NCBI GenBank assembly: GCA_020536535.1
Contig: JAHLWZ010000482.1
Coordinates: 1 to 44,226, forward strand
DNA length: 44,226 bases
Origin: Pelomyxa schiedti
Taxonomy: Eukaryota; Protista; Evosea
Reading direction: 5' to 3'
Position 1 is the first letter of the stretch. Each line of letters begins with the position of its first letter. The notes under the pieces were generated by a model, which was not told the origin of the DNA, did not search any database, and worked only from the letters and a program-made list of their open reading frames with translations. Below, piece after piece: positions 10,777 to 40,450 of the stretch. A program made the translations under genes and the position numbers.

Positions 10777-11849
10777 CTAGTTTTCCTTAGAAAGAGGAAG
10801 ACCATTATCAGGGGGGCTTGTTTTTGAGTCTGTATCACCTGATTTTATCATTACAAGTAAGACAGGATCCCACTGAGAGCAGAATTTAATTGGGTCACAA
10901 TACTCCTGGTTCACCGAGGTGTCATTGAAAAAGAACCACTGGCTTCTTGACTTGCAAAGTGAGGTGTAGTGACCTGCTGCATATCCCACAATAGAAATCA
11001 ACTGGTATTCTTGGCTGTGAGTGACCCAGGTCAAAAAAAACGAAAGGATAATTAGGAATCACACCCAAATAAATGTAAAGAGAGGTGATCATCTGGATGA
11101 AGGCTGATTTTTGAGGGGTCACTAGATGCAAGAATAAGGCCTTCTCCCAGTTCCATGTTCAAGATGGCCCTGAGATTCTGGCCTGATGTTAATGGAAGTC
11201 TTAGGAACACCAATATACAGATCCACAGTTGGAACAAGCTCTAAGAGTGGGAGCACTGTTCAGTGATTTATCCACTGAATCTTGCAAAGAAATCCCAGGG
11301 ACAGTGACAAGTACATGAAACTTGGGTATAGACTCATTGAATTTCACTGTTCCTTCTTTCTGAAAGCATTCCTGTACATAGTGAGAATTTCTATGTGAGA
11401 CCACAGGGGTAAGTGTATACTGAAGGGCAGGAAAGACTCTCAGACATATTGTGGATCAGGAACTTGTTAATTACAGAGGACCCTTCATCAACAAGCGTGT
11501 TCACCAGAAGTAAGAGGAATTTCTTCACGGTTTTCACTCACTCAAGTGAAAGCAGCACCACTACACACCAAAGCGGAGCCCGCAGAGTTGAGAACATTCT
11601 CAGACCTTGATGAAAGGTGTCTGAGCAACGGTTCCCCACTGCAACCTTCCATCAAAAATGACCGTAGGAGGGATTCCGTGATCCCACCACGTCTGTTCTC
11701 AGCGAAGTTTAACAGACACTTTATTGCCTGCAGGGCGGAGTTGAGGTAACACGTCATCCCTTTTAGGTACCGTTTGCGAAAAACAGGTAATAGTGAGTTT
11801 GTTGCAACGTGCTACCGTAGTTCACCAGCCCAATCGGTTGTGCCATCAT
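10777..11849 (-). CDS. Compact ubiquitin-specific protease (USP/peptidase C19), paralog A; multi-exon; C-terminal Zn finger cut off by a stop
   Basis: Spliced Cys box MMAQPIGLVNY|GMTCYLNSALQAIKCL. His box IVGYAAGHYTSLCKSRSQWFFFNDTSV. Homologous to paralogs B and C throughout. Confidence 0.85.
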
Positions 11850-11950
11850 AGGCTGTTCTACAAACCAACTTGTGTTTGAACGTCTCCCAAGCTGATTAAT
11901 TTTTAAAGATAAAAATTAAAAACGAATCTTCTGAAGAGGAGGTGGACAAG

Positions 11951-14900
11951 TCAACTGCGAAGGATGGGACACTTGATAATCAGAACCGTTTCAGGGAGAC
12001 AGGACACACCTGCGACAATCCTGGCCCAATGAATGTCTCCTGGCAGGGTGTGACCCAGATTTTCCTCAATTAGCTGTAGGAATGGCTTCTCTGCATCCCT
12101 TTTACCAGGCATCGAAATTTCTCTTTTCCCAATTGAAATGAGAAGGCTCTGCAGAGTAAACTTGTGGTCAGAGCACAGATGGTTTTTGGCTATTGCTTGA
12201 AGGCAGGCCATTCGCACTTGAATGATAGTCACTGGTGCTCCAGTGCAGTGAATAATGGTACTGGAAAAACAAGGAAGGCCTCTTGAACTTGTTCCTGCTG
12301 GTTTGCTTGGAGTTCGGGAGAGTTTATTTGACCGTAAGCAGCAGTATCCAGAGTAGCTTGTTGCCTTAGATGAAGTTCCTGACAGTTTGTACAGTTCAAG
12401 GGAAACTAATCCAGCTGCAATGCTGGTGGATGTAACAATTGCTGGGATGATAGAACCTGCAAGAGCATGTGCCTCAGTGATTTCTTTAATAGGCAGCCCA
12501 CGGGTCATGCTTAGAAGGTTACCTGCACTGCTCACAAATTTCAAGTGTGTTGGGTCGTCCTTATTGAAGTAAAAAGACTTATTCGTTCCAAAGAGGAGAT
12601 CAAGAAGGTCACTACAACTTTTTACTAGCATATTCTTCCAGACATTGCTTGTACAAGTCGCTTCACAAATCTCACGCAAAGGCTTTGGGCATATTTTGAA
12701 ACCAGTCCAGAAAGGTACACCTTTCTCATCAACGGACTCTGCAGGATGAACAGTCAATAGCTTCTCGATCTCTGTAACAAACCAGGTGCGCAACTGAGAA
12801 TGTATCCAAGCTTGCTTCTGCTCTTGGTTGTGTTGAAGCCCACTGTAAAGGGATACAATATTGCTAGATTTTTCACAGATATCAAAATGATCCTGTATCT
12901 GTTGGCAGCTCATATTTACAGTCAAGGGCCAATCTGGTTGGCGTGCCATCTCAGCAAAAACAGAGCCTTTTTCCCAAAAGATTTCATTAAATCTGTCTTT
13001 TCCCCATTCCATGCAATGTATCGGATTAAAGGGAAATGTCTTCCCTGTGCACACTGCTTTGGCAACGTTGGCTCCCACCACCGGTGGTGAATATTCTGCT
13101 GTGTAGTACGGTATCACAACTTTGCAAGAGCACACCAATCCCTCTGTCCCAGCTTCAAACATCGGAAGATGGTAAAAATGTGCCTTCTCATTCAGTAAAA
13201 CTCTGGCCTCAACGTTGTCAACCCCACAAATAATGGCATCAATGTTTTCCCATAGGGAATCACTAAACTCCCCTTCAAAACAAGCTTCTACCTGAAGCTG
13301 AAGAGCTCTTGAATGGGCAGATAATGAAGAGTTGAGATCAATAATTGCTCTAGATAAGGCAGTGACAGCCTTGTTCCTCTCCACATCTGACTCTCTGAAA
13401 AGCAGTTGCCGGTTGAGGTTGGATTTAGAGATTGAATCATGGTCTGTAACAACTATGCATCCACTATCTTCACATGCAATTCCGGTCATTGCAAAGTTTT
13501 TTATATATTCGCACCCAAGTGCTCCTGCTCCAACTAGAAAGGGCCGTAATCTCATTAACCTCTCTTGAGTACTCCAGCCAAAGATTTCTGCTCCCTTGTC
13601 ATATCTGCTCCCTTTGCCCTAGATTTTAATTTACTTAAAGATGGAGGCAAAACAATAAGGCGATACTGTTGTATCCAACGGTTTTACGTCAGGTAGGCAA
13701 TCATCAGCACTGATGAAATACCATTGGTGGACAGGCGTGTGTAAATGGAGGAGAGCTTTGATAACTTCTTGGGAGGCAAGTCCACCAAGGATAGAATTAA
13801 GTCCAAAAACAACGCCACCCACCTGAGGTGCCAATTTTTCCAAGAGTTCCTTGGAGACAGGAAAGTTGTAGGAATTCACTGTATCAACAATACTTTTTGT
13901 GTCCCTATCATCCCACACATGGGGACTGCATCCAGTGTCTTGCACAAAAGTTGAATAGGCCTTTATAAGTCCAAAAACTGTCATAGAAGTATGTAGATCA
14001 CAGGTTGATGGGAATGAAGGGGCTGTACTTAGACTTTGCTGTAGAGATACCTAAAGAAAGTTAACGATCTATCAGAGGAAAAAAAAAACACTACAGATGG
14101 TGGGAGCGTGTCAGTGATTGACACCCTTTGGTAAGACCCTCCACCAGGGAAAGTACTCCCTGAAGTGCCAGAAAGTTTTGTCAGAGATGAAGCAGATATA
14201 GAAAAAGATGTCTCAGTAAGTATATCTGCAATAGGGAATGGCTCAGAGGCCTCATTGAGACAATTGAGAGCTGTTCCAGAAAAGGTAATAGTATCAAATA
14301 AGGTCAGGCCATGGGATAAATCCGCGGCATTAATTACAAGTACGGTCCCCTCTAAAGCATCGTCCACAAACTTAATCTGGTCAATGGTCTTATCCATTTT
14401 CTCAATTCCCAAGTCGAAAGTGAAGGTACTGGGTCCAAAGTCATTAAAAATTGCTCCCGCAACGCCTATCGACTGTGCAGCAATAAACGGTATTCCTAAT
14501 TGTCGGCACTTTTCATCACATTGTAGGGATAATTTGTCGGGAATGGGGCCTTCAGCATACAACACTGCACTTTGATTCGAAATTCTGACAAGTAACTCAC
14601 CCTCCCTGTGCACAGTCACTTTCACATCTGGAAACCAATACGAAATCCTTTCAAGAATGACTACAGCCATCTCGTTTCCAATGCGCCCTTCTTGATTCGC
14701 AAGTAGAAACTGCGTATTTCAAGCAAGTCGAGAGGAGTGAGTTCGTTTTAGGCCAAAAGTAAATAAATTTTCAAGCTGAAAACAGGGGGAAAAAATCACA
14801 CGTTTGTATTCACGTCCTCTTGGGTCACAAGCCCCTCACAAAACAACTGCAACTCGCCCACTCCCATAAGTGCCAGATCCTTGATTGCCTCGGCGACCAA

Positions 14901-15017
14901 CGGTCCACATCCCACAATTGCAACCGTGGCGCGTCCGAGCGCCTCGACCCCCGACGCTCCGCCGAGCACCGGGAACTGCCTCGAGACCTTCATATACGCC
15001 GACGAAAGGGCCGACAT
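11951..15017 (-). CDS. Divergent monomeric Uba1/Uba6/Uba7-type Ubl-activating enzyme E1 (about 960 aa, 4 exons: about 15017-14802, 14709-14095, 14050-13666, 13618-11951)
   Basis: N-terminal SRQFPVLG and inactive adenylation domain (IVGCGPLVAEAIKDLALMGV). FCCH-like region. Active adenylation domain FLVGAGALGCEYIKN..DHDSISKSNLNRQLLFR..DNVEAR. Catalytic Cys in VCTGKTFPFNPIHCMEWG. FNKDD and AGSIIPAIVTSTSIAAGLVSLELYK. GT-AG introns restore the frame. Confidence 0.93.
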
Positions 15018-15168
15018 TGGATATTTCGTTATTATTTGCCAAGTCGGCTCTTACGTGCGCCGCAGCACCCCCGAGGGCAACTCTTTGGTTGGAGTTGCTT
15101 TTGGTCCCCAACTTGGGCATGGAATCCACCAACTCGGAGCGAAAACCTATCAAAAAACCAAAGATAAG

Positions 15169-15588
15169 ATGGACGGGCCTGAAGTACCGACGGCGCAATG
15201 GGTTGAAGACGACGAGGACTATTTGTACATCATGGTTGAGGGTTACGACTCAGCTTACAAGGAGCGTATTAATGACCGACTGAAAAACTGTTACAACTAT
15301 GTATTGTGTTTGGCGCAGTTGTGTGTGCTTTTAATACTTCACAAGGTTGTTGCTGGAGAAGGCATGAAGTTTACCGTTCCTAATGTACGGTTGTGCCCCT
15401 GGTGCAATGCGGAGAACATCCTCAAAGGAACATTCCAGCACTGCAAGCACGCCAACTGCTACAACTGTAACCGTGAATTTTGCTATTCTTGCTTGGGGAA
15501 AAAGGAGCCTGGTGGTGCATGGCCATGCGGTTGGACACCATTTCAACCTTGCCCAACAGGTGTTGCAAAGAGGCAACAGCTTCTATGA
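15169..15588 (+). CDS. Small stand-alone RBR-type Rcat (RING2) domain protein, about 124 aa, putative Cys-dependent ligase
   Basis: ATG at 15169. Probable in-frame GT-AG intron 15301-15345. CPWC..QHCKHANCYNCNREFCYSCL..WPC..C matches the Rcat pattern with catalytic Cys-x-His. No RING1 or IBR is visible. Confidence 0.8.
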   Translation: MDGPEVPTAQWVEDDEDYLYIMVEGYDSAYKERINDRLKNCYNYVLCLAQLCVLLILHKVVAGEGMKFTVPNVRLCPWCNAENILKGTFQHCKHANCYNCNREFCYSCLGKKEPGGAWPCGWTPFQPCPTGVAKRQQLL

Positions 15589-15710: not shown

Positions 15711-15968
15711 TTATAAGTGTCCTCCAGTGGGTGCATAGACCACGTCAATAACATTGGGCTCTCTTATAGTGAAGTTTCTCAGCTCCCTGGCAACGTCGTC
15801 AAGAGGTTCCCCATTGAGACGTAATATGATGTTTGCCTGCCCGCCAAAGAAACGGTTCCTTATAGTCGACGCTGCATCTTTGGCGAGAGTGCAAAGTGGA
15901 AGAACGAGTTCCTTTGGCTTGTTGGGAAAGCTGGGATGATAAATTTTGACTGTGATGCGGTCTGTCAT
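15711..15968 (-). CDS. Ubiquitin-like modifier precursor, 85 aa, C-terminal di-Gly followed by a 2-aa propeptide (TGG-HL)
   Basis: Beta-grasp pattern ITVKI..ELVL..helix..ILRLNGEPLDD..LRNFTIREPNVIDVVYAPTGG aligns with Ub [32 protein letters not shown]. It is not ubiquitin, NEDD8 or canonical SUMO by sequence. Confidence 0.88.
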   Translation of the reverse strand: MTDRITVKIYHPSFPNKPKELVLPLCTLAKDAASTIRNRFFGGQANIILRLNGEPLDDVARELRNFTIREPNVIDVVYAPTGGHL

Positions 15969-16361: not shown

Positions 16362-17675
16362 TTAGGTTGGCGAGTATCTATTTCTTGAAATACCTTGAAC
16401 TTGAGAAGCCCCATGCTTCTCACACATATGACTACCATGTTGTCTCTCTTTACATTCCGGGCATAGATCTTGATCTCCGCATTCAAGGCAGGAGTACCAA
16501 CATGCGGTCCACTGCTTGCAAAGTGTGCATTCTTTTTCGGTACTTTCATCATCACTTGTTCCCCACGCATCTTCATCGTTGCCTAAAGATGGAAACCAGG
16601 TTGTAGTGGGTTGCTCAGGTAAAGTGAGATGTGGCTTTATCGGTAAATCGATATCAATCCCGGTGGGTTCAACGTCTGATTTTGTAAATACAAGAAGTAC
16701 AGGGTTCCATTGAAAGCAATACTCATTTGGATCATGGTAACGGTGCTCTACAATTGAATCGTTGAAGTAGAGCCACTCATTAGCTACATTACAGAGAGCC
16801 GTATAATGGAAACCGGCATGCCCCACAATTGACGAGAGCTGATAGGGCTGCCTTTAAAGGAAGTGACAAAAGAATAGCGTAAAGTGCACTGACCCAAACA
16901 ACATCAAAAAATTGGAGTCTGGGTAAAGAGAGATCTCTGTGGGATTACGAGAGGCTATTACGACCCCTGTACCAAGGTCCATATCCAATTTTGAGATGAG
17001 ACTCTTTGAATAACTTGAGATTTGTCTGCTACAAGAGGAGGAAAATACCGAGCTGCAATTAGGGCAGGTTCTCACTGAAGATGATACTAGTGATCTATCC
17101 ACTGAGTCCTGTAAAGAAGATCCAGCAACAGTGATAAGTACACTGAATTTTGGGATATTTTCACTAAACTTTAGCGGCCCCTCTTTGTGCGTGCATTTCT
17201 AACAAAGAGATTTGTTTCAAATGAGCATGCATAGATTGGAATTACCAAGCACCAGAGGGTCTCCGACATGTTGTGAATGAGGAACCTCTCCACAACAGAG
17301 GAGGATCCTTCATCAACAAGTGTGTTCACCAAGAGCGTCAAAAATTTCTATCAAAGGGATTAAGGGAGAGATAAAACAGAGAGCTGTACCAGAGCAGAAG
17401 ACGCCATGTGTGGGTCATTCTCTGACCTCCGCGAGATATGCCTCAGGAATGGTTCTCCACTTCCTCCCTCCATCAAAAAAGACTTGAGCAACCTCTTCGC
17501 CTTTGCATCCCCGGTTATGCAACTGTTCACCTCCTCAAAGTCCACCAAACATTTAATGGCCTGCAGGGTGGCGTTGAGGTAACACGTAAGCCCTGCCGTT
17601 CGTCAGCAGCCAAAAAAAACTTAAAAAAAACGGTGCATCAAACGTGCCGTAGTTTGTCAACCCTCCCCTGGACAT
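16362..17675 (-). CDS. Compact USP protease paralog B with C-terminal ZZ-type zinc finger; multi-exon
   Basis: Spliced MSRGGLTNY|GLTCYLNATLQAIKCL. His box IVGHAGFHYTALCNVANEWLYFNDSIV. ZZ-like CTLC..WYSCLECGDQDLCPEC..HGSH. Confidence 0.85.
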
Positions 17676-17805: not shown

Positions 17806-19385
17806 ATGGCACAACAGCCCGCGGGGCTACACAATTATGGTGTGTCAGTACCCCAGTGATCAGTATGTCGCCAAACAACGTTTTTTTTTTCGCCCTAGGG
17901 ATGACCTGTTACCTCAATGCGACGTTGCAGGCAATAAAATGTTTGCTGAACTTTGACGAGCCAACTGAAGCCAATACTACTACAACTACTACGACATCAG
18001 CAACGCGAGACCATCCGGCGAAGAGGTTGCTCAAGTCTTTTTTGATGGAGGGAGGAAGTGGAGAACCATTCCTGAGGCATCTTGCACAGAGGTCAGAGAA
18101 TGACCCACACATGGCCTCATCTGCTCTGGTAGAGTATTTTTTTTTTTTTTGTCTTGCCCCTGTCTTCCACAAACAAAAAAAAACGTTGAGCATTCAAAGC
18201 CACACAACAGAAATTTTTGACGCTCTTGGTGAACACACTTGTTGATGAAGGATCCTCCTCTGTTGTGGAGAGGTTCCTCATTCACAACATGTTGGAGACT
18301 CTGTCTTGTCCCTCGGTCACTCTTGTTTTATAGTTGAATAACATCCTCATGTCAAGCAGGCATGCCACCAAGCCAGTTCACCCCTGAAATTCAGTGAAGC
18401 CATTCCAAAGTTCCATGTGCTGATTACTGTTGCTGGCTCTTCATTGCAAGAGTCTGTTGACAAGTCCTTGAGCACACAGTCACATAGTACCTGTATACAC
18501 TGTCATAAAGTAAGCCTTAAAGAAATGACCACAACCCATATCCAGACTGCAACCAAACAAAATTGATAATAACAATTTTGTTTGTAATTCCCAATAAGTT
18601 ACATGATTAAAGCACTTGCTATCTGAATTGGAAATGGAGCTTGGAGAGGGGTTTATCCTGGCTTGTAGTGATCCAAGCAGAATCCGGTTATATCCTGACT
18701 CCTACAATCTAAGAGTTTTCAAGTATGTCTCGTTTTCACCCTGGTTTATGTTTTTACATCTTCCTCAAGCTTGAACTATAACTTAAAATCAATTGTTGGT
18801 CATGCAGGATTCCACTATACATCACTTTGTTACACAAACAGCCAGTGGTACTTTTTCAGTGATGAAAACCTCTCTACGGATACCTATACCGACTTGAATG
18901 TGTACTGTGACAATTGGACTCCTGTGTTGCTTGTTTATGTCAGAGGGACCTTCCTCCCACCTGACGATCAGCCCGTCATATCCCACCACGATAATCCACC
19001 AAGCTTGAGCAACGAAACCTCCTGCAGTGCATTCCTTGATGACGGAGCCTTTACAGGCCCAGAACAAGTCACCTGCAGTACTTGTGAGTTTCCAACAGCT
19101 GCGTGGTACGCCTGTCTAAATTGCCAATGCACAATATGTCCCAGCTGTGAAGACAGGGGGAGGAAAGGACTGAAAGGACACAAGAACCACATTATTGAAA
19201 GGTGTGGTGTTGAAAATTCTGTGAGACACATCTACCGTTGTCGCTCCTGTAAAAAATTTATTGCCAAAGAAGAGGAGCTCTTTCCTAGCAATGGCTATGT
19301 TTATCACATGGAGTGTGCTAAAAGGTGTGGCATAGCATGTTGGTTATGTAAAAAGAAGGTCCCTAAAGAACGACAACCAAGGTAA
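17806..19385 (+). CDS. Compact USP protease paralog C with ZZ-type and LIM-like zinc fingers; multi-exon
   Basis: Spliced MAQQPAGLHNY|GMTCYLNATLQAIKCL. His box IVGHAGFHYTSLCYTNSQWYFFSDENL. ZZ-like CSTC..WYACLNCQCTICPSC..HKNH. LIM-like CRSC..YHMEC..CWLC. Internal splice sites near 18510-18615 are uncertain. Confidence 0.82.
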
Positions 19386-23938: not shown

Positions 23939-24332
23939 CTCACTTGGAAGTCCCTGAAACCCCAAAAAGCGTTTCTTTTCTGAAGTTCTCTGGAATCACT
24001 GACTACCACTGTTTCCTGTCCAGTCCAGGCAGCTCCCAGATAATCTTGAAAACAACTTCGGCCGAGTCATGCCAGGGACACATTATAACCAAGGTGGTTG
24101 GCACCAGAAGCAACACTCATCAGATCAAGCTCAGCCACTCCAAAAGGACGGCAGAGCAAAGCATATGGAGCAGGAGGAGCAAGGAACCGAATATAGTCCC
24201 AGACTTCAGAAACAAGCAAGAAGACAACACCAGCGTATGGTTGCTTCTTACACTGCTGACTCTCAGCCTGAACAGCATGGTCAAGAAGACCACAGTCGGA
24301 ACCTCCACCACAACCACCATAGACACAGCCGT

Positions 24333-24384
<52 letters not shown>

Positions 24385-25042
24385 CACAACAACAACACCA
24401 GCAGCGGACCCAGCAACCCCAACCCCAACAACAACAGCCACGAGCACAAACATAGGCCCTCAACATGTTGCCAGTTCCAAGGACAGCAGCACGGCCCACT
24501 GTCATCACCACACCCCCACCACCACCTTGCACTTACACACATGTGGTACAGCAGCAGGGAGCTGCTGCTGATGCACCCCAGGTTCAATCACAGTTGCTGC
24601 AACAACTTTATCAAGGGAAGTGCCAGAACCGCCAGCAACAGCAGTATCATAAGCCGACGCAATCTCTCCCAAACAGCTATCCGACACCACCAAGGGGAAC
24701 CTCTTCACCACCTCATCACCCTGTTGTGCACACACAAGTGCAACAACTAAGACCACGCCAGGAACAACCACCACCACCATCACCTCAACAAGTATCTCTT
24801 GGGTTCCGCAATACACACACCACACAGCCAGCTGTTCCCCTGATGCAACAACGGGGTCAATCCCACCGGGTTGTATCACCACCACAACCGTCGCCGTTGC
24901 ATCAGTCAGCACCGCCACCAAGGCACACAGCTCCACACCTACAGCAGCAACATGCAGGATCACAACAATACCGGCAATCACAGCAATCACAGTATGTGCA
25001 TGCTATCCCGCCATCATCAGCACATCCCGCCACTGTTCCTGC

Positions 25043-25078
<36 letters not shown>

Positions 25079-25125
25079 GCAACGGTTGTGATGATGGTGA
25101 TGAGGGAGTACGTGGCACACGTTGC

Positions 25126-25170
<45 letters not shown>

Positions 25171-26262
25171 GCAGGAACAGTGGCGGGATGTGCTGATGAT
25201 GGCGGGATAGCATGCACATACTGTGATTGCTGTGATTGCCGGTATTGTTGTGATCCTGCATGTTGCTGCTGCTGTAGGTGTGGAGCTGTGTGCCTTGGTG
25301 GCGGTGCTGACTGATGCAACGGCGACGGTTGTGGTGGTGATACAACCCGGTGGGATTGACCCCGTTGTTGCATCAGGGGAACAGCTGGCTGTGTGGTGTG
25401 TGTATTGCGGAACCCAAGAGATACTTGTTGAGGTGATGGTGGTGGTGGTTGTTCCTGGCGTGGTCTTAGTTGTTGCACTTGTGTGTGCACAACAGGGTGA
25501 TGAGGTGGTGAAGAGGTTCCCCTTGGTGGTGTCGGATAGCTGTTTGGGAGAGATTGCGTCGGCTTATGATACTGCTGTTGTTGGCGGTTCTGGCACATCC
25601 CTTGATAAAGTTGTTGCAGCAACTGTGATTGAACCTGGGGTGCATCAGCAGCTCCCTGCTGCTGTACCACATGTGTGTAAGTGCAAGGTGGTGGTGGGGG
25701 TGTGGTGATGACAATGGGCCGTGCTGCTGTCCTTGGAACTGGCAAAGTGTTGAGGGCCTGTGTTTGTGCTCGTGGCTGTTGTTGTTGGGGTTGGGGTTGC
25801 TGGGTCCGCTGCTGGTGTTGTTGTTGTGGTTGCTGTTGCTGTTGCTGTTGCTGCGGCCGCTGTTGCTGCTGACGGCTGTGTCTATGGTGGTTGTGGTGGA
25901 GGTTCCGACTGTGGTCTTCTTGACCATGCTGTTCCGGCTGAGAGTCAGCAGTGTAAGAAGCAACCATACGCTGGTGTTGTCTTCTTGCTTGTTTCTGAAG
26001 TCTGGGACTATATTCGGTTCCTTGCTCCTCCTGCTCCATGCTTTGCTCTGCCGTCCTTTTGGAGTAGCTGAGCTTGATCTGATGAGTGTTGCTTCTGGTG
26101 CCAACCACCTTGGTTATAATGTGTCCTGGGCATGACTCAGCTGAAGTTGTTTTCAAGATTATCTGGGAGCTGCCTGGACTGGACAGGAAACAGTGGTAGT
26201 CAGTGATTCCAGAGAACTTCAGAAAAGAAACGCTTTTTGGGGTTTCAGGGACTTCCAAGTGA
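23939..26262. repeat. Long inverted repeat (fold-back): arms 23939-25084 and 25120-26262, 35-bp spacer; contains CAA/CAG and CAGCAA microsatellites
   Basis: Arm starts ctcacttggaagtccctg and the other ends cagggacttccaagtgag. Mirror-image polyQ ORFs. Arms differ by scattered substitutions and repeat-length changes. Confidence 0.93.
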
Positions 26263-26315
26263 GCAGGGTACCTTGAGATATGAAGAAGAAGAAGAAGAGT
26301 AAGTAAAAATCGGGC

Positions 26316-28697: not shown

Positions 28698-28808
28698 ACA
28701 ACAGAATTAAATTTGTTATCGGCAAACGCGACGGTCTGGTTTATTTTATTGTCCCAAGTATCGTTAGTCTTGAGTTATTTAGCATTATTCTACTCAAAAG
28801 AAAAAAAC

Positions 28809-31663
28809 ATGGATGAATTGCAGACGCAGCTCCCCGATCCTCTGCTTATCGTCCTTGTGGAGAGTGGCAATTCTCTCTCTCAGGAGAGTTACAGCGGCAT
28901 TGTAACACACACTCTTCCGCTTGTCGTTCATAAGACACGGGGGATGCTGCGCAGCATCATCGAGTTCGCCACTACGGTGAAGGTTGTTTGTCCATTTACC
29001 GCAAACGATGCCGTATTGACGTGTGCAATCAAAGGGACCGATGAAATGGTCCCCAACCCAAAATTTCCAAAGGACCCTACAAAGGCTGTGAAGAAGCACC
29101 CAGGTATGACGCAAATGCATGGAGGAGCAAACCTTGCCGATGCCCTCACATCGGCAACATTCGCCGCCCTCGGTGCCATGTCAGAGACCTCCAAGCTTGT
29201 GGTTCTGCTGATTGTCAGTGGCCAGTTTACTTCCCCATTCAGCAAACCCTACCAGGATCTCATGGCTTTGACCCCCCCTCCAATAGTGATGGCTGTTGCT
29301 GTTGGAAGCCATGTGACTGAGGAAGAGTTCAATGGTCTTTTTCCAGGAGCCAGAATATTCTTCTCTGGAAATAACCAGAAACTCTACACTCTACTGAGTG
29401 AGCTGCAGCGAGTGGAGCAACCACCACCAATTGACATTTCCTGTTCACAAGTTGGGACAACATTCCAGACGACTGCTGACCCTGTAATCCTTCATGTAAG
29501 CATTAGACCTACATCAATTACAGGCACCGTTCCCGCAGTAAGCATAACCGTTACTTCCAACCTTGTTATTGATTTTCCCTGTGATAGGGAACCATTCTGC
29601 ACTTCTTGCCAGGGTTCTACCTGGACGAGGTTGTCAAGACCACCGCGGACGTGGACAGAGATCACCCGTTCGAGACTACGGTGACACTGCAGCCCGGGCA
29701 GAGGGCTCTAATTTACAAGGGGCTTGTGCCAGACAAGGTGCTCTACGAGTGCTTCATGGAGGGGACCAAGTACACCGGCTTTGTGACACTTCTTCTAGGT
29801 GCGTGATAGTGCCGTGCACAGGTGCAGTTGGTTGTTTATGTCTTCAGTTTTTATGTTGCTTTTTCTTACTGGCCTGTTTGCTTTCCTGCTTTCTCCCTTT
29901 TTTTTTGCTTGGTTTCAGTCTCCAATTGAACATACCTTTTTTTTTTGTCCAGCATGGTTTGGAGCTGAGTGGCTACCAGAAAGGACCAGGTTGCCAAACC
30001 CAACCATGACAAGGATCAATATTCTTGTATGCAGTGACTGTCTTTTTTTTTGCTTCACTTGGCTCCTCTTCAGTGGAGCCCAACAAATGAGAAAAAAACA
30101 ACAGAAATAACAAATCACAAAAAATTAGGTGTGGGGATGGTATGGATCTGGAAAGAGCGCGTTTTACAATGGAGTTGCAACGTCATTCAGCTCTGAGCAG
30201 AAAGTCCTATCGCCGCTGCTGGCGTTCAACATGCCAGAGCATGTCACTGGTGACTACACGGATCACCCACTCGCGGACCTCCTCAGCGGGAACTCAGTGA
30301 CAGATAAATTAATGAGAAAGCTTAACCTGCACTTCTGGGACCCGTGGGGAATCTCAGAGAATAACTACAAGAAGGTGTCCGTCATGGACTTTTTGAATGG
30401 GAGAATTGAGTCAGGAACCAGCATGGAAGACTCGTTCAACATCGTTGTTAACCCTGACAAGGCCAGTATCATCCATTCTGTCATCCTCCTGGTGCCGATC
30501 GGCACTGGCGCCAACCCACAGGCCCTGGAGATTCTCGGAACACACGTGAAGGCCATCATCAGAGCTGGGAGGAAGCCGATCGTCGTGTGCAACTTCGTGA
30601 ACAGGGTGAGCGATGAGCTTGAGGTGGAAGAGAACTACAAGAAAATACGCAGTGCCACCTTTTTGCCTGAGAAGTGTGTGATCAAGTTTGACAACTACGT
30701 TGAGGAAACGCATCGCAACATGGAGAAGGACCTTCAGTATTGGGGAATCCTGAGGCTTGCGTTCACGTACCCCCCAACTTTTGGTTAAACTTTTGAATGC
30801 ATACCGCAAATAAACTTCAAACACACAAATATGGCATATAGTTGTGGTTATATCATCAATAAAAACCAAGCGAAACGAAATAGAAAATACAAGAAAAAAG
30901 AAACACATAACCATTAAGCAAAACAAAAAAAAAAAAAAAAGTCAAGTAACCACCCTCAGGAATGCAATTACATATTTGTTGTCCCATCCTCGGGACTGTT
31001 ACCTTGAAGGGACTCCGCCAAGCGGCTCCCATCCCCCAGTCATCTGCCCTTCCACCCCCCCACCCCTGGCAGAGCCTACAGCTCTGGAGACACTCAGTCA
31101 AGTTGATGTCATTGATGCCAACAATCCTTCTCTCGTTTCCAATCTGTGGGAAATTGATAGGTATTCATTAAAATGCTTTAGTAGCTACTTATTCTAACTG
31201 AAAACACAGCAACACAAAACTCACTGCCGTGCGCAAAGAGGTTGAAGCAACTGGAGAGTTCACCAGCATTTCACCTTGGATCTTTATTGACGATGCTGGG
31301 AAACAAGTGTCCGTTGCCAAGGAATCAGACCTCACACTGAAGCAAATACTGCGGACTGGTCACATACCATCCATCAGGATACAAAAGTACACGAAAGTGG
31401 TGACGACAGAGCCAACACTTGGAATATACCTGACCACCCCAAAGTCAACACAGGTGCCAGACTACCTCTATGACCTGCTTGTGCCAGAAAACTTCTTGGA
31501 GAAGTCTGTGGCGTGGCTAGACGAGCAGCTCGCGGATTACGACATTCTCGCGAAGAGCAAGGCTGCCAGGGTCGCCCCCTCAGCAAGGGGGAGAGTGCCT
31601 CTCAAGAACGTAATCGACACTCTTGACGGGAAACAAGTTGTTTATGTCACTGAGAGGCCCTGA
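28809..31663 (+). CDS. vWA domain + IFI44-like P-loop NTPase/GTPase + C-terminal probable beta-grasp domains, paralog 1; multi-exon
   Basis: vWA-like N-terminus (LLIVLVESGNS, GGANLADAL, LLIVSG, MAVAVG). Spliced RINIL|VWGWYGSGKSAFYN (Walker A), FWDPWG (DxxG), FLNGRI and IHSVILLV, as in the IFI44 family. GT-AG introns. Confidence 0.75.
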
Positions 31664-31779
31664 ACAGGGTTGTTGAAAAAAGTTTTAAAGGAACGGCTCA
31701 CGGACTCACTGCAGAAATCACTAGCAACTCTGCTTCCTCGCTGTTGGCAAACTTGCCCCAAAGTCGCTTAAACACTGTT

Positions 31780-32000
31780 TACCCCTGTTGTTACTACCCT
31801 GCTGCTTTTTCGTGTGCTGTTGTTGTGCAGTGGCGGGATATGATGATGGAGAGACAGCATGCACATACCGTGATTGCTGTTTGCTGTGTGCCTTGGCGGT
31901 GCAGAGTGATGTAACGACGACGGCTGTGGTGATAAAACCCAGTGAGACCATGTTGCTGCTGACGGCTGTGTCTATGGTTCCGACTGTGGTCTTTCTTTTT
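31780..32000 (-). repeat. Deleted, degenerate copy of the Q-rich sequence of the 23939-26262 palindrome
   Basis: KTTVG..IDTAVSSN and YVHAVSPSSYPAT match the palindrome ORFs. Confidence 0.7.
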
Positions 32001-32486
32001 TCCGCATTCAACCTATTGTACTGGGCCCTGCCTCCATTTCAAATGAATTTCAGTGACACTGGTATGTCGCTTCTTTTCCTTTTTTCCAGTCTCACAGAGC
32101 GTAATTAAGTAGTTGACTTTGCTGGCAGAGATGACAGCGTGTTACCAAGGAGCATTCCCTCCTTCTCCATGCCGGTAAAAAAAGTTCCTATCACTTCCAT
32201 AAAGAGGGCAGAATCACATGGCGGTAGAATCGTGCAACTGACTCGCCGGGCCATTTGGAAGGCCTGAGCCCGGGTTCCTTGAACCATCACTCGGACAAAT
32301 TGTCGTACACTGCGCACGGTACCAAGGTAGGTTAGTTGAGACTGGGTGGAGCCCTCTATTGCATATCTCCCCTTTGTTTTTTCCCGAATTTGGGGACGTC
32401 GCCACCTTGTTGTTTTTTTTTACCCGTTCGTCAAGCCTTGGCACTGCATGATGGTCTCCTTCAACACTTAAACTAGGACCATAAGG

Positions 32487-35067
32487 ATGACAAGCACTGA
32501 CTTGGTGAACGAACTGCAGGCGCAACTTACATCAGACACCCTTCTTATCATACTCGTGGATAGCTCCGAATCTGTTGCTGCGAGTTACCCAACGATTGTC
32601 ACGGGGATCCTGCCCCTCATTCTGGAAAAGACACCAGGAATGATACGAAGCATCATCGAATTCGGCACTGCCGTGAAGACGGTGTGCGCCTTCACCAAAA
32701 ACAGCACAGTGCTGATGAACGCGGTAAAAGGAACAAACGTCATGATCCCCCACCCTAAGTTCCCGCACGACCGCTCCAAGGACGTGAAGAGAAACCCAGG
32801 TATGACACACATGGGTGGAGGCAGCAACCTTGCCGAAGGTCTGACGACGTGCATGTGGGCGCTGTTAGGGTCAGACATGCCGAAGACAGCAATAATACTC
32901 ATTACCAATGGAGAGCCCTCCTCGGATATCAGTAAAGCGTACCGTTCTCTCATGGACTTGCGCCCCGTGCTCATCGCAGTGGGGGTGGGTCATGGCGTTG
33001 AGGAACATAAATTTGCCAGCTTGCTCCCCGATGCCCACAGGTTCTTGTCCAGGGACTACACTGGTCTTCTGAGCACTCTACAAGCCCTTCGACCCATCAT
33101 GCCTAAGTTCGAGATAACGTGCAGGCAGATTGGCACTACACTGCAAAATACAACAGACCCTGTGGTGCTGGAAGTCGTCATCTCCCCACTTCTGATCAAT
33201 GGGGTGGTTCCTGCAGTAAGCCTTCTGAGATACAAGATTGAAACTAACTGTACAATGAAAAGGGCACTGTCTTGCACTTCTTGCCTGGATTCTACCTGGA
33301 CGAAGTGGTCAAGACAACTGCTGATGCATATAGGGAGCGTCCTTTTGAGACGACAGTAACACTGAAGCCAGGGCGGTGGGCTAGCTACAAAGGGCTTGTG
33401 CCTGAAAAGGTTCGCTATGAGTGCTTCATGGATGGAACAAAGTACACTGGATACGTGCCTCTTCTTCTTGGTCTGGCACCCTGGGTTACTCATTGTCCCC
33501 CTCTTTTTTCTGTTTTTTGATCACTTCCCTGATAATAGCGTGGTTTGGAGCTGAGTGGCTGCCAGAAAGGAGAGGATTTCCAAACCCAACAGAGATATCG
33601 ATCAACATCCTGGTGTGTTGATCTTGTGCATACACCAACCAACCCAAAAAAAAAAAAAGGTGTGGGGATGGTATGGCTCTGGAAAGAGTGCGTTTTGCAA
33701 TGGACTGGCAACCTCCTTTAGCTCCGGGCAAGACGTACTTGCCCCTTTGCAGGCCTTCAGTATGCCTGGGCACGTCACGGGCAATTACACTGAGCACCCA
33801 CTTGCAGAACTTCTGCCAGGAAACTGCCCAACCGACGAAATGATGAGGAGGCTCAACCTGCGCTTCTGGGATCCATGGGGCATATCTGACAGCAACTACA
33901 AAAAGGTGAGCGTTGTGGACTTCCTGAACGGGAAGGTCCGGCCAGGAACGCCAATGGAGGACTCTTTTGACATCATTGTCGAGCCGGACAAGTCGCGCAT
34001 CATCCACTCTGTCATCGTCATTGTCCCGATTGGTACCGCGGCCAACCCCCAGAGCCTTGAAATTCTCGGAACACACGTGAAGGCCATCATCAGGGCCGGC
34101 AGGCAGCCGATCGTCGTGTGCAACTTCATCAACAGTGTAAGTGATGAGAATGAAGTGGAGGAGAAGGCCAAGAAAATACGCACCGCCATGTATTTGCCCG
34201 AGAGGTCTGTGATCAAGTTTGACAACTACGTTGAAGAGAAAACACGCAACATGGAGAAGGACCTTCAGTACTGGCGAATCTTGAGGCTTGCATACATGTA
34301 ATCGGGTTTTTTTTTCCTCCTTTTTGCTTTTCACTTCGTGCATTTGTTTTTAGGAATGCCATTACATATCTCCTGTCACATCCCAGAGAGTGTTACCTTG
34401 AGGGAACACCGACAACCGCGACTGCTACCACCATCCCAGCGTACAGTCCACCTGACCGTTCGGCCCCAACGACGGCTACACTGGCCGTATTGCTCGACCA
34501 GGTCGAGGTTGTGGACGGAAGCAATGCTCGTGTGACCTCCAATCTGTGGGGAATTCCAAAGTTCGAATCCACCTCCCTCCCTTCCTCATTTCCCAACACA
34601 CGACCTTACATTCCTTGAACAGCAACAAGAAACTTTCCGCCGTGCGTAGTGACGTTGACGAAACGGGAGAGTTCAAGGGGATCTCGCCATGGGTCTTTGT
34701 GGATGCTGCTGATGTACCAGTGCCCACCACAAAGGAGGCGGAGCTCACACTGAGGCAAATCCTGCGCTCGGGAGACACACTCTCAATCAGAGTTCAAATG
34801 AGCACCAAACCAAAGGCGGTCTCCTGCAGCCTGGGGGTTTACCAGGCGAAACCCAAGTCCTCATCCACTCCTGAATACCTGTACGACATCGAAGTGCCGG
34901 AAAATTTCCTGGACAGGTCCGTAGAGTGGCTCACCCAACAGCTGGGAGCTGATATTCTTGTGAGGAGCAGGGTTGCAAAGGTGGCCCCTCCAGCAAGGCC
35001 CAAGGTAGCCCTCAGGAGTGTTGTTGACGTCATCGATGGAAAAACTGTTGTTTATGTGGCGGGATAA
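32487..35067 (+). CDS. vWA domain + IFI44-like P-loop NTPase/GTPase + C-terminal probable beta-grasp domains, paralog 2; multi-exon
   Basis: MIDAS DSSES and LITNGEP. VWGWYGSGKSAFCN and FWDPWG. Same apparent exon layout as paralog 1, with high protein similarity. Confidence 0.78.
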
Positions 35068-38376: not shown

Positions 38377-40450
38377 TCAGTTTCCTCCGGCCCCATAATC
38401 ATCCAGCAGCATTTGCCAGCGGGCAACCCTGGCACACGGGTGTTCCTGGTTCTGCATCCGGGTTAGGGCTTTGTTGTCTGTCTTGACAACACATCCGACT
38501 CCGTGTATATAGCTGCGGAATTTCTTAAGTGCCCACACGACTGCCGCCGCCTCTAGCTCACACATGGTATCATACTTCTTTTCGTGGGGTGTGGTGACCC
38601 TGCTTGCAAGCTCAATAATGCGTTCCCCTCCCTTCGCGTCCATTTGTACCAGTACGGCCCCCATTCCCACCTTGCTAGCGTCCATGTGAATTTCCCGCCT
38701 GAACTCGGAGCTGTAATCGGGGTACTCAAGCAGTAGTTTCTCGGCAATTAGGTGCTTAATGTGTGTGAACGCTTCCTCACAGCGCTCATCCCACACCCAT
38801 GGCGCACCCTTCACGCCCAACTCTCTTAGTGGCACCGCCACTATGGCGAAGTCTGGCACAAACCTTGTGTAGTAGTTCACCATGTTTACGAATGTTTCCA
38901 ACTCCCCAGTCCATTGCCTCGGTTTCGGCCAGCCAGTGATTACCTTGATTATACCCTCGTCCATTCCCTGGCCCCTCCTTGATCACGCCCAGCCGCCGCA
39001 TCGTGTCGATCTCCTCCCCCACCATCTCCTTTTCTTTTGGAGACATGACTTTCTCTGGTCTGCACATGGTTCTGCACGGCTTAATTGGAATGTGGTGCTC
39101 CAGAAGTGTTGTCCTCCCCGGCTTAGCCCGGTCGTTCGTGAACAGGTCACTGAACTCCGTTTGTAGTTGGGTTAGTGCTGCTCTTTGCCCCTCTGTGAGG
39201 TTTTCCCATGTGATGCTGGCGGTTTTCCACTCAGCCTCATCCGTCTGTACTGTGGTGATGAACAGTTGGTTCACCCTTTCCTCTGGGGCGATTTCGTCAT
39301 ATGGGTCCCTAAGTTTCAACAGCATAGGGGGAATCGCCTGTGCAGTGTCGGCCTGTTCCGCGCTTCTCATTCTTTCCTCCTCTACTGTGACTGGCCACGC
39401 CACCGCGACGGGCTGCCCGGCCCTCACCACTAGTGTGGCCGATCCTTTGTTGAGTAGGCCCACGGTCACCACTCGCAGGTCGTCGAGCTGGGCAACACGG
39501 GGGTCCCCAAATGCCATTCCTCGCGGGAGTAGCACCCATCGCAGCCACACCCGCTTTCCAGCATGTGATGGACTTACCGACTCCACCGTGAGCCGGCGTG
39601 TGGTACCCGGTGGTACGTGCTGGTCCATAGTGGCAATTAGAGTGGCCTTTCCGTCGTCGTTCGTGGGGTTGATAAAGTCCCTCTTCCAGTCCCCACAGCG
39701 CACGCATCCTTTTGCCATTGACAGCTCGGCACCCACCTTCCACAGCAGGTCTAAGCCTATAAGGGCTTGGACTGGACACCCTTGGATTATGATGAAGTCG
39801 TGTTGTATCTTTTGCCCGCAAATGTGTGCCTTCATCCTTGCACGCCCCATTGCCAGCACCCGGCCTCCAATGCATGCAATTCTGCCACACCACGGCTCCC
39901 TGGCGATGTCCCCATCAGCCCATTGTATCCAACGGAAGGTGGCCTCATCCAGTATAGATATCGTCACGCACGTGTCCAACGTTAGCATAAGTCTCTTGCC
40001 ACCAATCCTTCCCCTGATAGTAGGTAATGCGGCACCTGATCCCCCATCCTTGAATATGCACACCCTGCCTCGTATCACGTTCTTCTCCCCCATTGGGTGG
40101 GTATCAGTGTCCATCCTCAGGTCTGCCCATGTAACTGTCTTGCGTGCTGTGGTCACTCCGGTTGGTTTCTCAGTGTCCCCAACTGAGCCTGGAAGGCTCC
40201 CCCTTTCTCCACCCAGTGGAGTGCCCATGGTGTCATCTGACACTGATGGGTTGGCCAGTGTAGGGTTAACAACTGCCAATACCACGGTTCCAGGGGTGAC
40301 GTGGTGCCCCAATATCTCTCCATGACTATAAATATTATGATTGTGCGGTGGGCCCAACAATCCAGCCTCACACGTAGGGTTATATTCGAGCGGAGGGCCC
40401 AACAATCCAACCTCTCTCGCCGATTTATTCCTGGTGGGTGCGCCGCCCAC
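38377..40450 (-). pseudogene. pol: aspartic protease, RT with deleted catalytic core, RNase H
   Basis: LDTCVTIS and ALIGLDLL protease motifs. RT start (EIDTMRRLGVIKE) is joined out of frame to the thumb (VNYYTRFVPDFA). No YxDD is present. Confidence 0.88.

Follow-up and report, generated by a model that had tools for sequence, protein, structure and literature searches.

The window analysed here is the whole of contig C482 (44,226 nucleotides) from the intron-rich 52.4-Mb genome of Pelomyxa schiedti. Genes for a ubiquitin-like protein (Ubl), a ubiquitin-type activating enzyme (E1), a stand-alone Rcat protein and USP-type deubiquitinases lie next to each other in the order USP, E1, Rcat, Ubl, USP, USP, with the following features:

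10777-11811, minus strand: USP-type deubiquitinase A (approximate limits; Cys box near 11760, His box near 10974)
11951-15017, minus strand: divergent monomeric UBA1/6/7-type E1 of 960 amino acids with catalytic Cys595, head-to-head with the Rcat gene (151 bp between the start codons)
11972-12259, minus strand: C-terminal domain of the E1, of the size of a UFD, predicted beta-grasp fold (pLDDT about 57-70), acidic hairpin loop lost
15108-15115, plus strand: octamer CCAACTTG in the common promoter gap of the E1 and Rcat genes
15169-15588, plus strand: stand-alone Rcat gene Pelo_6037 (124 amino acids), exons 15169-15300 and 15346-15588, with weak Pfam IBR/IBR_1 matches and an Rcat alignment to ARIH1/2
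15250-15288, plus strand: predicted helix 28-40, the likely equivalent of the donor-ubiquitin-binding IBR-RING2 helix of RBR ligases (AlphaFold model, ARIH2 alignment, HOIL-1 match; PMC9834252)
15301-15345, plus strand: GT-AG intron of Pelo_6037 (45 nt, phase 0), identical in position to that of the L032 orthologue
15442-15450, plus strand: putative catalytic Cys77-Lys78-His79 (Cys codon at 15442), aligned to GGCNH of ARIH1/ARIH2
15711-15968, minus strand: putative Ubl precursor of 85 amino acids ending in Gly-Gly plus two residues, convergent with the Rcat gene (122 bp from stop to stop); the best PDB match is a Ubl, though a weak one (E 0.16)
16362-17602, minus strand: USP-type deubiquitinase B (approximate limits), with two introns spliced in an RNA contig
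17880-19385, plus strand: USP-type deubiquitinase C (approximate limits)

Reading of the open frames and splice sites placed the ATG of the Rcat gene at 15169 and its stop codon at 15586-15588. The resulting model and the NCBI model Pelo_6037 both encode 124 residues, in agreement with the length of about 124 given in the first-pass annotation of this DNA. Exon 2, the intron-retaining frame or database proteins served as queries in the homology searches. Further copies of the octamer CCAACTTG are located at 11865, 16045 and 17735, near starts of cluster genes. It occurs nine times in the window, compared to 3.5 expected, and a count of nine was reached in none of 100 shuffles. The octamer is absent from the related loci L032, L034 and L036.

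The Rcat pattern occupies the C-terminal 65 residues of Pelo_6037. When a profile of its relatives was compared with ARIH2, an E value of 1e-12 was obtained and Cys77-Lys78-His79 fell on the catalytic GGCNH of ARIH1/ARIH2, which bears out the earlier claim of an Rcat domain with an intact C-K-H. Judged from the alignment, all eight Rcat zinc ligands seem to be present (Cys61/64/82/85 and positions 90/93/105/113), in addition to Cys77 and His79. The AlphaFold model (mean pLDDT 88) consists of a hairpin (residues 9-23), a helix (28-40), a second hairpin and then the Rcat. Its top match among solved structures was the HOIL-1 RING2 bound to ubiquitin (9egv; residues 26-117, rmsd 3.8), with a Z score of 4.5 that is low on its own for such a small domain, while RBR domains filled all the top rows. 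The predicted helix 28-40 matches the post-IBR helix of ARIH2 as well as the HOIL-1 helix and would thus correspond to the helix at the donor-ubiquitin site of RBR ligases. The part preceding the Rcat had been described as a short acidic segment; it is indeed acidic in Pelo_6037, but it is also predicted to form the hairpin, helix and hairpin mentioned above, and relatives do not share the acidity. Cys41 (15289-15291), the residue that closes the helix, is conserved in every clade member whose sequence covers this region. No zinc partner is obvious for it, and it could serve as a second cysteine of reactive or structural function.

A profile constructed from 20 full-length relatives picked up each of the three exons that encode RING1-IBR in a paralogue on another Pelomyxa contig, C1260, and detected no RING1-IBR upstream of the Rcat in the window, where it scored the Rcat alone, as a fold cross-match. 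Pelo_6037 itself has only one zinc module and the absence of RING1 and IBR, as claimed before, is therefore upheld. In RBR ligases, RING1 recruits the E2 and the helix between IBR and RING2 binds the Ile44 patch of the donor ubiquitin (PMC9834252). As the helix and the Rcat are kept and RING1 is missing, Pelo_6037 appears to be a donor-binding and catalytic module that lacks the E2-binding module. In its working it resembles the catalytic half of an RBR ligase, yet, having neither RING1 nor IBR, it is not a member of the RBR family. Pelo_6037 shares with the RBR E3 ligases (ARIH1/HHARI, ARIH2, Parkin, HOIP, HOIL-1, RNF216) the zinc pattern of the Rcat, the catalytic Cys-x-His and the preceding donor-ubiquitin helix, and differs from them by lacking RING1, IBR and an autoinhibitory domain and by being encoded as a 124-amino-acid protein in a gene of its own beside those for a Ubl and an E1. 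The parent family is an uncharacterised Ubl-RING1-like-IBR-Rcat family of protists and fish, to which the zebrafish si:ch211-212k18.15 cluster and the C1260 paralogue belong. Its members have the PxxRxCP, CKH and C-terminal RQ signature in common with Pelo_6037 (Atlas TM 0.64 over residues 4-124), whereas the small proteins have lost all that precedes the post-IBR helix and branch separately.

Word-based searches returned only the query and three clade members, and the family was revealed by an exhaustive HMMER scan, in which short proteins ranked best and seven agreed with the query in layout and signature. Including Pelo_6037, eight stand-alone Rcat proteins were thus obtained, from Pelomyxa, Arcella intermedia, Filamoeba sp. 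and Dracoamoeba jomungandri together with four further sequences. The members from Arcella, Filamoeba and Dracoamoeba, organisms that we take to be Amoebozoa, come from transcriptomes. Among 50 Rcat domains, the eight formed a single branch (SH-aLRT 89) in a quick tree that was based on few columns and for a group that had been picked by eye beforehand. Cys77 is invariant in the clade (8/8), and His79 is found in six members and replaced by Trp or Tyr in the other two. Tandem stand-alone Rcat genes with Cys-Lys-Tyr instead of Cys-Lys-His were observed at L035:442-1261 (assembly GCA_006365035.1), where the contig then ends.

These relatives bear on whether the gene is a 3' fragment, a pseudogene or a mis-assembly of a longer RBR gene. 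Some of the short database matches are true fragments with remnants of an IBR, and transcript evidence for the Rcat gene is absent, as the RNA-library contigs, which were too sparse for 5' ends to be placed, reach the E1 and a single USP in part and none lies over the Rcat or the Ubl gene. On the other hand, a single DNA contig covers the entire region, the E1 gene begins 151 bp upstream on the opposite strand with no RING1-IBR signal in front of the Rcat, and the same truncated layout recurs throughout the clade of eight. The intron of the L032 orthologue interrupts the gene at exactly the same codon boundary as that of Pelo_6037, an in-frame stop precedes the Rcat open reading frame by 5-11 codons in three relatives for which DNA is available, and at three loci a divergent neighbouring gene lies within 48-151 bp of the Rcat gene. 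One of these is L036, where a divergent gene resembling a USP (weakly, E 0.09) lies 48 bp upstream and the contig stops just past the Rcat gene. Because of the stand-alone clade, the common intron position, the upstream stops and the close divergent neighbours, a fragment of a longer RBR, one of the outcomes that would have overturned the first-pass annotation, is effectively excluded for Pelo_6037, and fragment, pseudogene and mis-assembly taken together are highly improbable.

A viral or bacterial origin of the stand-alone Rcat was considered and is unsupported, since searches of viral and prokaryotic contigs gave no relatives. A pattern scan of metagenomes yielded nothing but one full-length RBR relative. 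In the ESM Atlas, a cluster of 95 giant-virus proteins of about 106 amino acids has a feature score of 0.93 to Pelo_6037 and may consist of viral Rcat-only proteins.

The Ubl gene of the window has no Pfam match. At L032, from an AT-rich eukaryote, the Rcat gene is likewise followed by a convergent gene, which encodes an 89-residue protein of the ubiquitin family with a di-Gly and a short tail (Pfam E 2e-8), and at L034 by a convergent gene for 78 residues that ends in Gly-Gly and gives weak Ubl matches. A convergent Rcat/Ubl pair is therefore present at all three loci at which the downstream neighbour is another, readable gene. This recurrence of the gene pair in three organisms is new support for a connection with a private Ubl, and we consider it probable that the Rcat serves a dedicated Ubl pathway. 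If the Rcat instead used ordinary ubiquitin with the general E1 and E2, the neighbouring Ubl would not be its modifier. The three Ubls are very divergent, as this would allow, and the one from the window is the least recognisable, being no closer to those of L032 and L034 than shuffled sequences are (z 1.4-1.8). However, the L032 and L034 Ubls are alike (z 8.3) and chance would hardly place a gene for a di-Gly Ubl immediately downstream of the Rcat in three unrelated organisms, which makes the use of ordinary ubiquitin improbable. Pelo_6037 is best explained as the helix-RING2 catalytic module of an RBR ligase that was turned into a separate gene in an amoebozoan-type lineage, for a private Ubl.

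Among these loci, an E1 gene adjoins the Rcat/Ubl pair in Pelomyxa only; 45 kb of the L032 contig around the pair contain a USP about 13 kb away and neither an E1 nor an E2. Self-contained clusters with a modifier, an E1 and a protease are also known from prokaryotes, such as the Caldiarchaeum Ub-E1-E2-RING-DUB cluster and BilABCD (PMC11354881), but those contain an E2, whereas the Pelomyxa cluster is eukaryotic and combines a monomeric UBA1-type E1 with USPs and an Rcat.

The E1 of the cluster has the IAD-FCCH-4HB-AAD-SCCH layout of UBA1/6/7 with a catalytic cysteine, and about 900 of its 960 residues, through to the C-terminus, align with the structures of Uba1, Uba6 and Uba7 (Z about 49). 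About seven genes for monomeric UBA1/6/7-type E1s are present in Pelomyxa (contigs C482, C1260, C1127, C171, C423, C851 and C1272), which is an unusual expansion, and scans for motifs in the surroundings of the remaining E1 genes showed no clusters. The UFD had been called poorly recognisable in the first-pass annotation. Regarding sequence this stands, as the UFD profile gave no signal on the tail of the cluster E1 (-1.5 bits, the level of shuffled sequences), whereas canonical tails, each left out in turn, reached 32-85 bits. Also, it is the sole one without a UFD profile signal among the seven monomeric Pelomyxa E1s examined, those of C1260 and C1272 being weak. Regarding fold the statement has to be softened, since the tail past the adenylation domain has a normal length (166 amino acids) and a UFD-like fold is still predicted, from an alignment that contained true UFDs and thus biased the prediction. 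The cluster E1 also lacks the acidic loop close to its C-terminus; in E1 enzymes, helix A of the E2 binds an acidic patch of the UFD (PMC12355090).

The SCCH domain of the cluster E1 is short by about 70 residues over the region of the cys-cap (position according to PMC9391358). The E1 of C1260 has a similar deletion, with spans of 48 and 59 residues in the two enzymes compared to 94-126 in others. Loss of the cys-cap as a mark of E2-free transfer was therefore rejected, because the C1260 E1 is linked to an E2, and SCCH shortening is not diagnostic of E2 use. Similarly, a charge pairing between the acidic N-terminal hairpin of the Rcat and the basic E1 tail was set aside because the N-termini of the other clade members are neutral or basic.

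No E2 had been found in the window before, and this result holds with profiles: UQ_con and the Atg3/Atg10 family had no match on the Rcat contig, and Pfam scans of 30 other frames of the window showed no E2-like domain. On the whole Pelomyxa genome, UQ_con gave 65 matches on about 40 contigs. A second Ubl cluster, on C1260 (L011:374-8850), encodes an E2, a small Ubl, a USP, the Ubl-RING1-like-IBR-Rcat paralogue and a divergent E1 with a shortened SCCH. In this E2, HPG replaces HPN and the basic helix (helix-A motif) is degenerate. A test for the HPN motif alone is therefore unsafe, as it would miss an E2 of the HPG type, and it is the HMM search that bears the claim. E2 and RING1-IBR are present together on C1260 and absent together from the Rcat cluster; this fits a joint loss, although the comparison covers only two clusters and the C1260 E2 could serve both. 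Modifiers that function without an E2 are known in Urm1 and SAMP, although these systems, unlike the Pelomyxa cluster, have no catalytic E3.

The first-pass annotation had left two options, namely that the mini-Rcat replaces the E2 or that it borrows an unlinked one. Direct transfer is plausible and has a precedent in vitro, while the sequence is compatible with either option and cannot separate them. Our tentative preference, held with slightly less than even confidence, is that the UBA1-type E1 passes the private Ubl directly to the stand-alone Rcat ligase in a two-enzyme route, encoded together with USPs of its own in an operon-like cluster. It would start with the trimming of the Ubl to its di-Gly by a cluster USP, after which the E1 would adenylate the Ubl and form E1~Ubl on Cys595. 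The retained helix 28-40 may then bind the thioester-linked Ubl so that Cys77 accepts it straight from the E1, with the rebuilt, non-acidic C-terminal domain of the E1 possibly docking the Rcat in the place of an E2. Finally, Rcat~Ubl would discharge to a substrate, with His79 as the base, and the cluster USPs would undo the conjugation. Several observations favour this E2-free route: RING1 is absent while the donor-ubiquitin helix and the catalytic cysteine are kept; E1, Ubl, Rcat and three USPs are clustered with no detectable E2; C1260 pairs its E2 with a RING1-like-IBR-Rcat protein; the cluster E1 has neither a UFD signal nor the acidic loop; the convergent Rcat/Ubl pair recurs at L032 and L034; and isolated Rcat modules of HOIP and Parkin act with E1 alone. 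The HOIP RING2-LDD without RING1-IBR formed chains with E1 alone and was not stimulated by E2 (PMC3463842), and the catalytic moiety of Parkin had E2-independent activity in vitro (PMC3100294). These engineered fragments (HOIP RING2-LDD and Parkin IBR-RING2) resemble Pelo_6037 in being RING1-less Rcat modules with E1-only activity in vitro, but they are artificial, weak and act on ubiquitin, whereas in Pelo_6037 the truncation arose naturally, is conserved and goes with a private Ubl. In vitro, human RBRs have only weak activity without an E2, and the authors of the HOIP study thought a physiological role unlikely (PMC3463842).

Other observations weaken the E2-free route, and some of them lend themselves to a three-step cascade, in which the cluster E1 would charge a co-evolved unlinked E2, such as the HPG-type enzyme of C1260, and the Rcat would capture the Ubl via the helix alone or with a RING1-IBR acting in trans, as a split RBR. 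Candidates exist on the roughly 40 contigs with E2 matches, and the C1260 E2, with its degenerate basic helix in place of the helix-A motif, could suit a non-acidic UFD. The cluster E1 keeps a tail of UFD length with a predicted UFD-like fold and shares its SCCH deletion with the C1260 E1. Moreover, the 45 kb around the L032 pair revealed no E1, so that genes of this pathway can be unlinked, no RNA contig lies over the Rcat and Ubl genes, and the contrast in co-occurrence concerns two clusters only. In RBR complexes, most of the interface with helix-RING2 is supplied by ubiquitin (PMC9834252), which suits capture via the helix alone. Yet E2 does not activate HOIP that lacks RING1-IBR (PMC3463842), UbcH7 and UbcH8 are not bound by the RING2 of Parkin, and all other types of components are clustered in the window. 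Also, the profile search revealed no orphan RING1-IBR gene within the window, as a split RBR would call for. We regard the three-step cascade as possible and as the less likely of the two options. No other single mechanism explains the data better than direct transfer from E1 to Rcat, which we favour tentatively because it is unproven and all of its catalytic steps are inferred.

Even when loaded by the E1, the Rcat might not be a ligase; it might be a carrier, substituting for an E2 and needing a separate specificity factor or E3, or a regulator that discharges or binds the Ubl. A protein of 124 amino acids leaves little space for a substrate-binding domain, and the occurrence of Trp or Tyr at position 79 in two of the eight members, next to an invariant Cys77, would be compatible with such a role. 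Nevertheless, the second zinc site and the C-terminal extension are kept, which form the region of RBRs that sets the choice of substrate and linkage (PMC9834252), and no partner E3 is seen in the cluster. A carrier or regulator is unlikely, if less so than the use of ordinary ubiquitin.

Canonical E1 pathways all proceed via an E2, and the ability of isolated Rcat modules from HOIP and Parkin to act without one has been regarded as a peculiarity of in-vitro assays. An Rcat-only family that occurs in nature, with its own Ubl and a rebuilt docking domain on the E1, offers a system of four soluble proteins in which the evolutionary use of this shortcut can be tested. Should the pathway depend on an unlinked E2, the RING1-less RBR derivative and the Ubl pathway at this locus would still both appear to be undescribed; in the literature, of which few subscription papers were within reach, we found no natural Rcat-only family, no such cluster and no direct E1-to-E3 transfer.

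Elsewhere in the window, Pfam matches indicated VWA-domain exons of two genes at 28713-33359, and a minus-strand frame of 554 amino acids (38786-40450) matched retropepsin-type aspartyl proteases and is probably a remnant of a retrotransposon. Strong opposite GC and AT skews, long overlapping frames and repeated low-complexity sequence at 24000-26300 suggest an inverted repeat element. Another repeated stretch is common to the regions at 23.7 kb and 42.5 kb.
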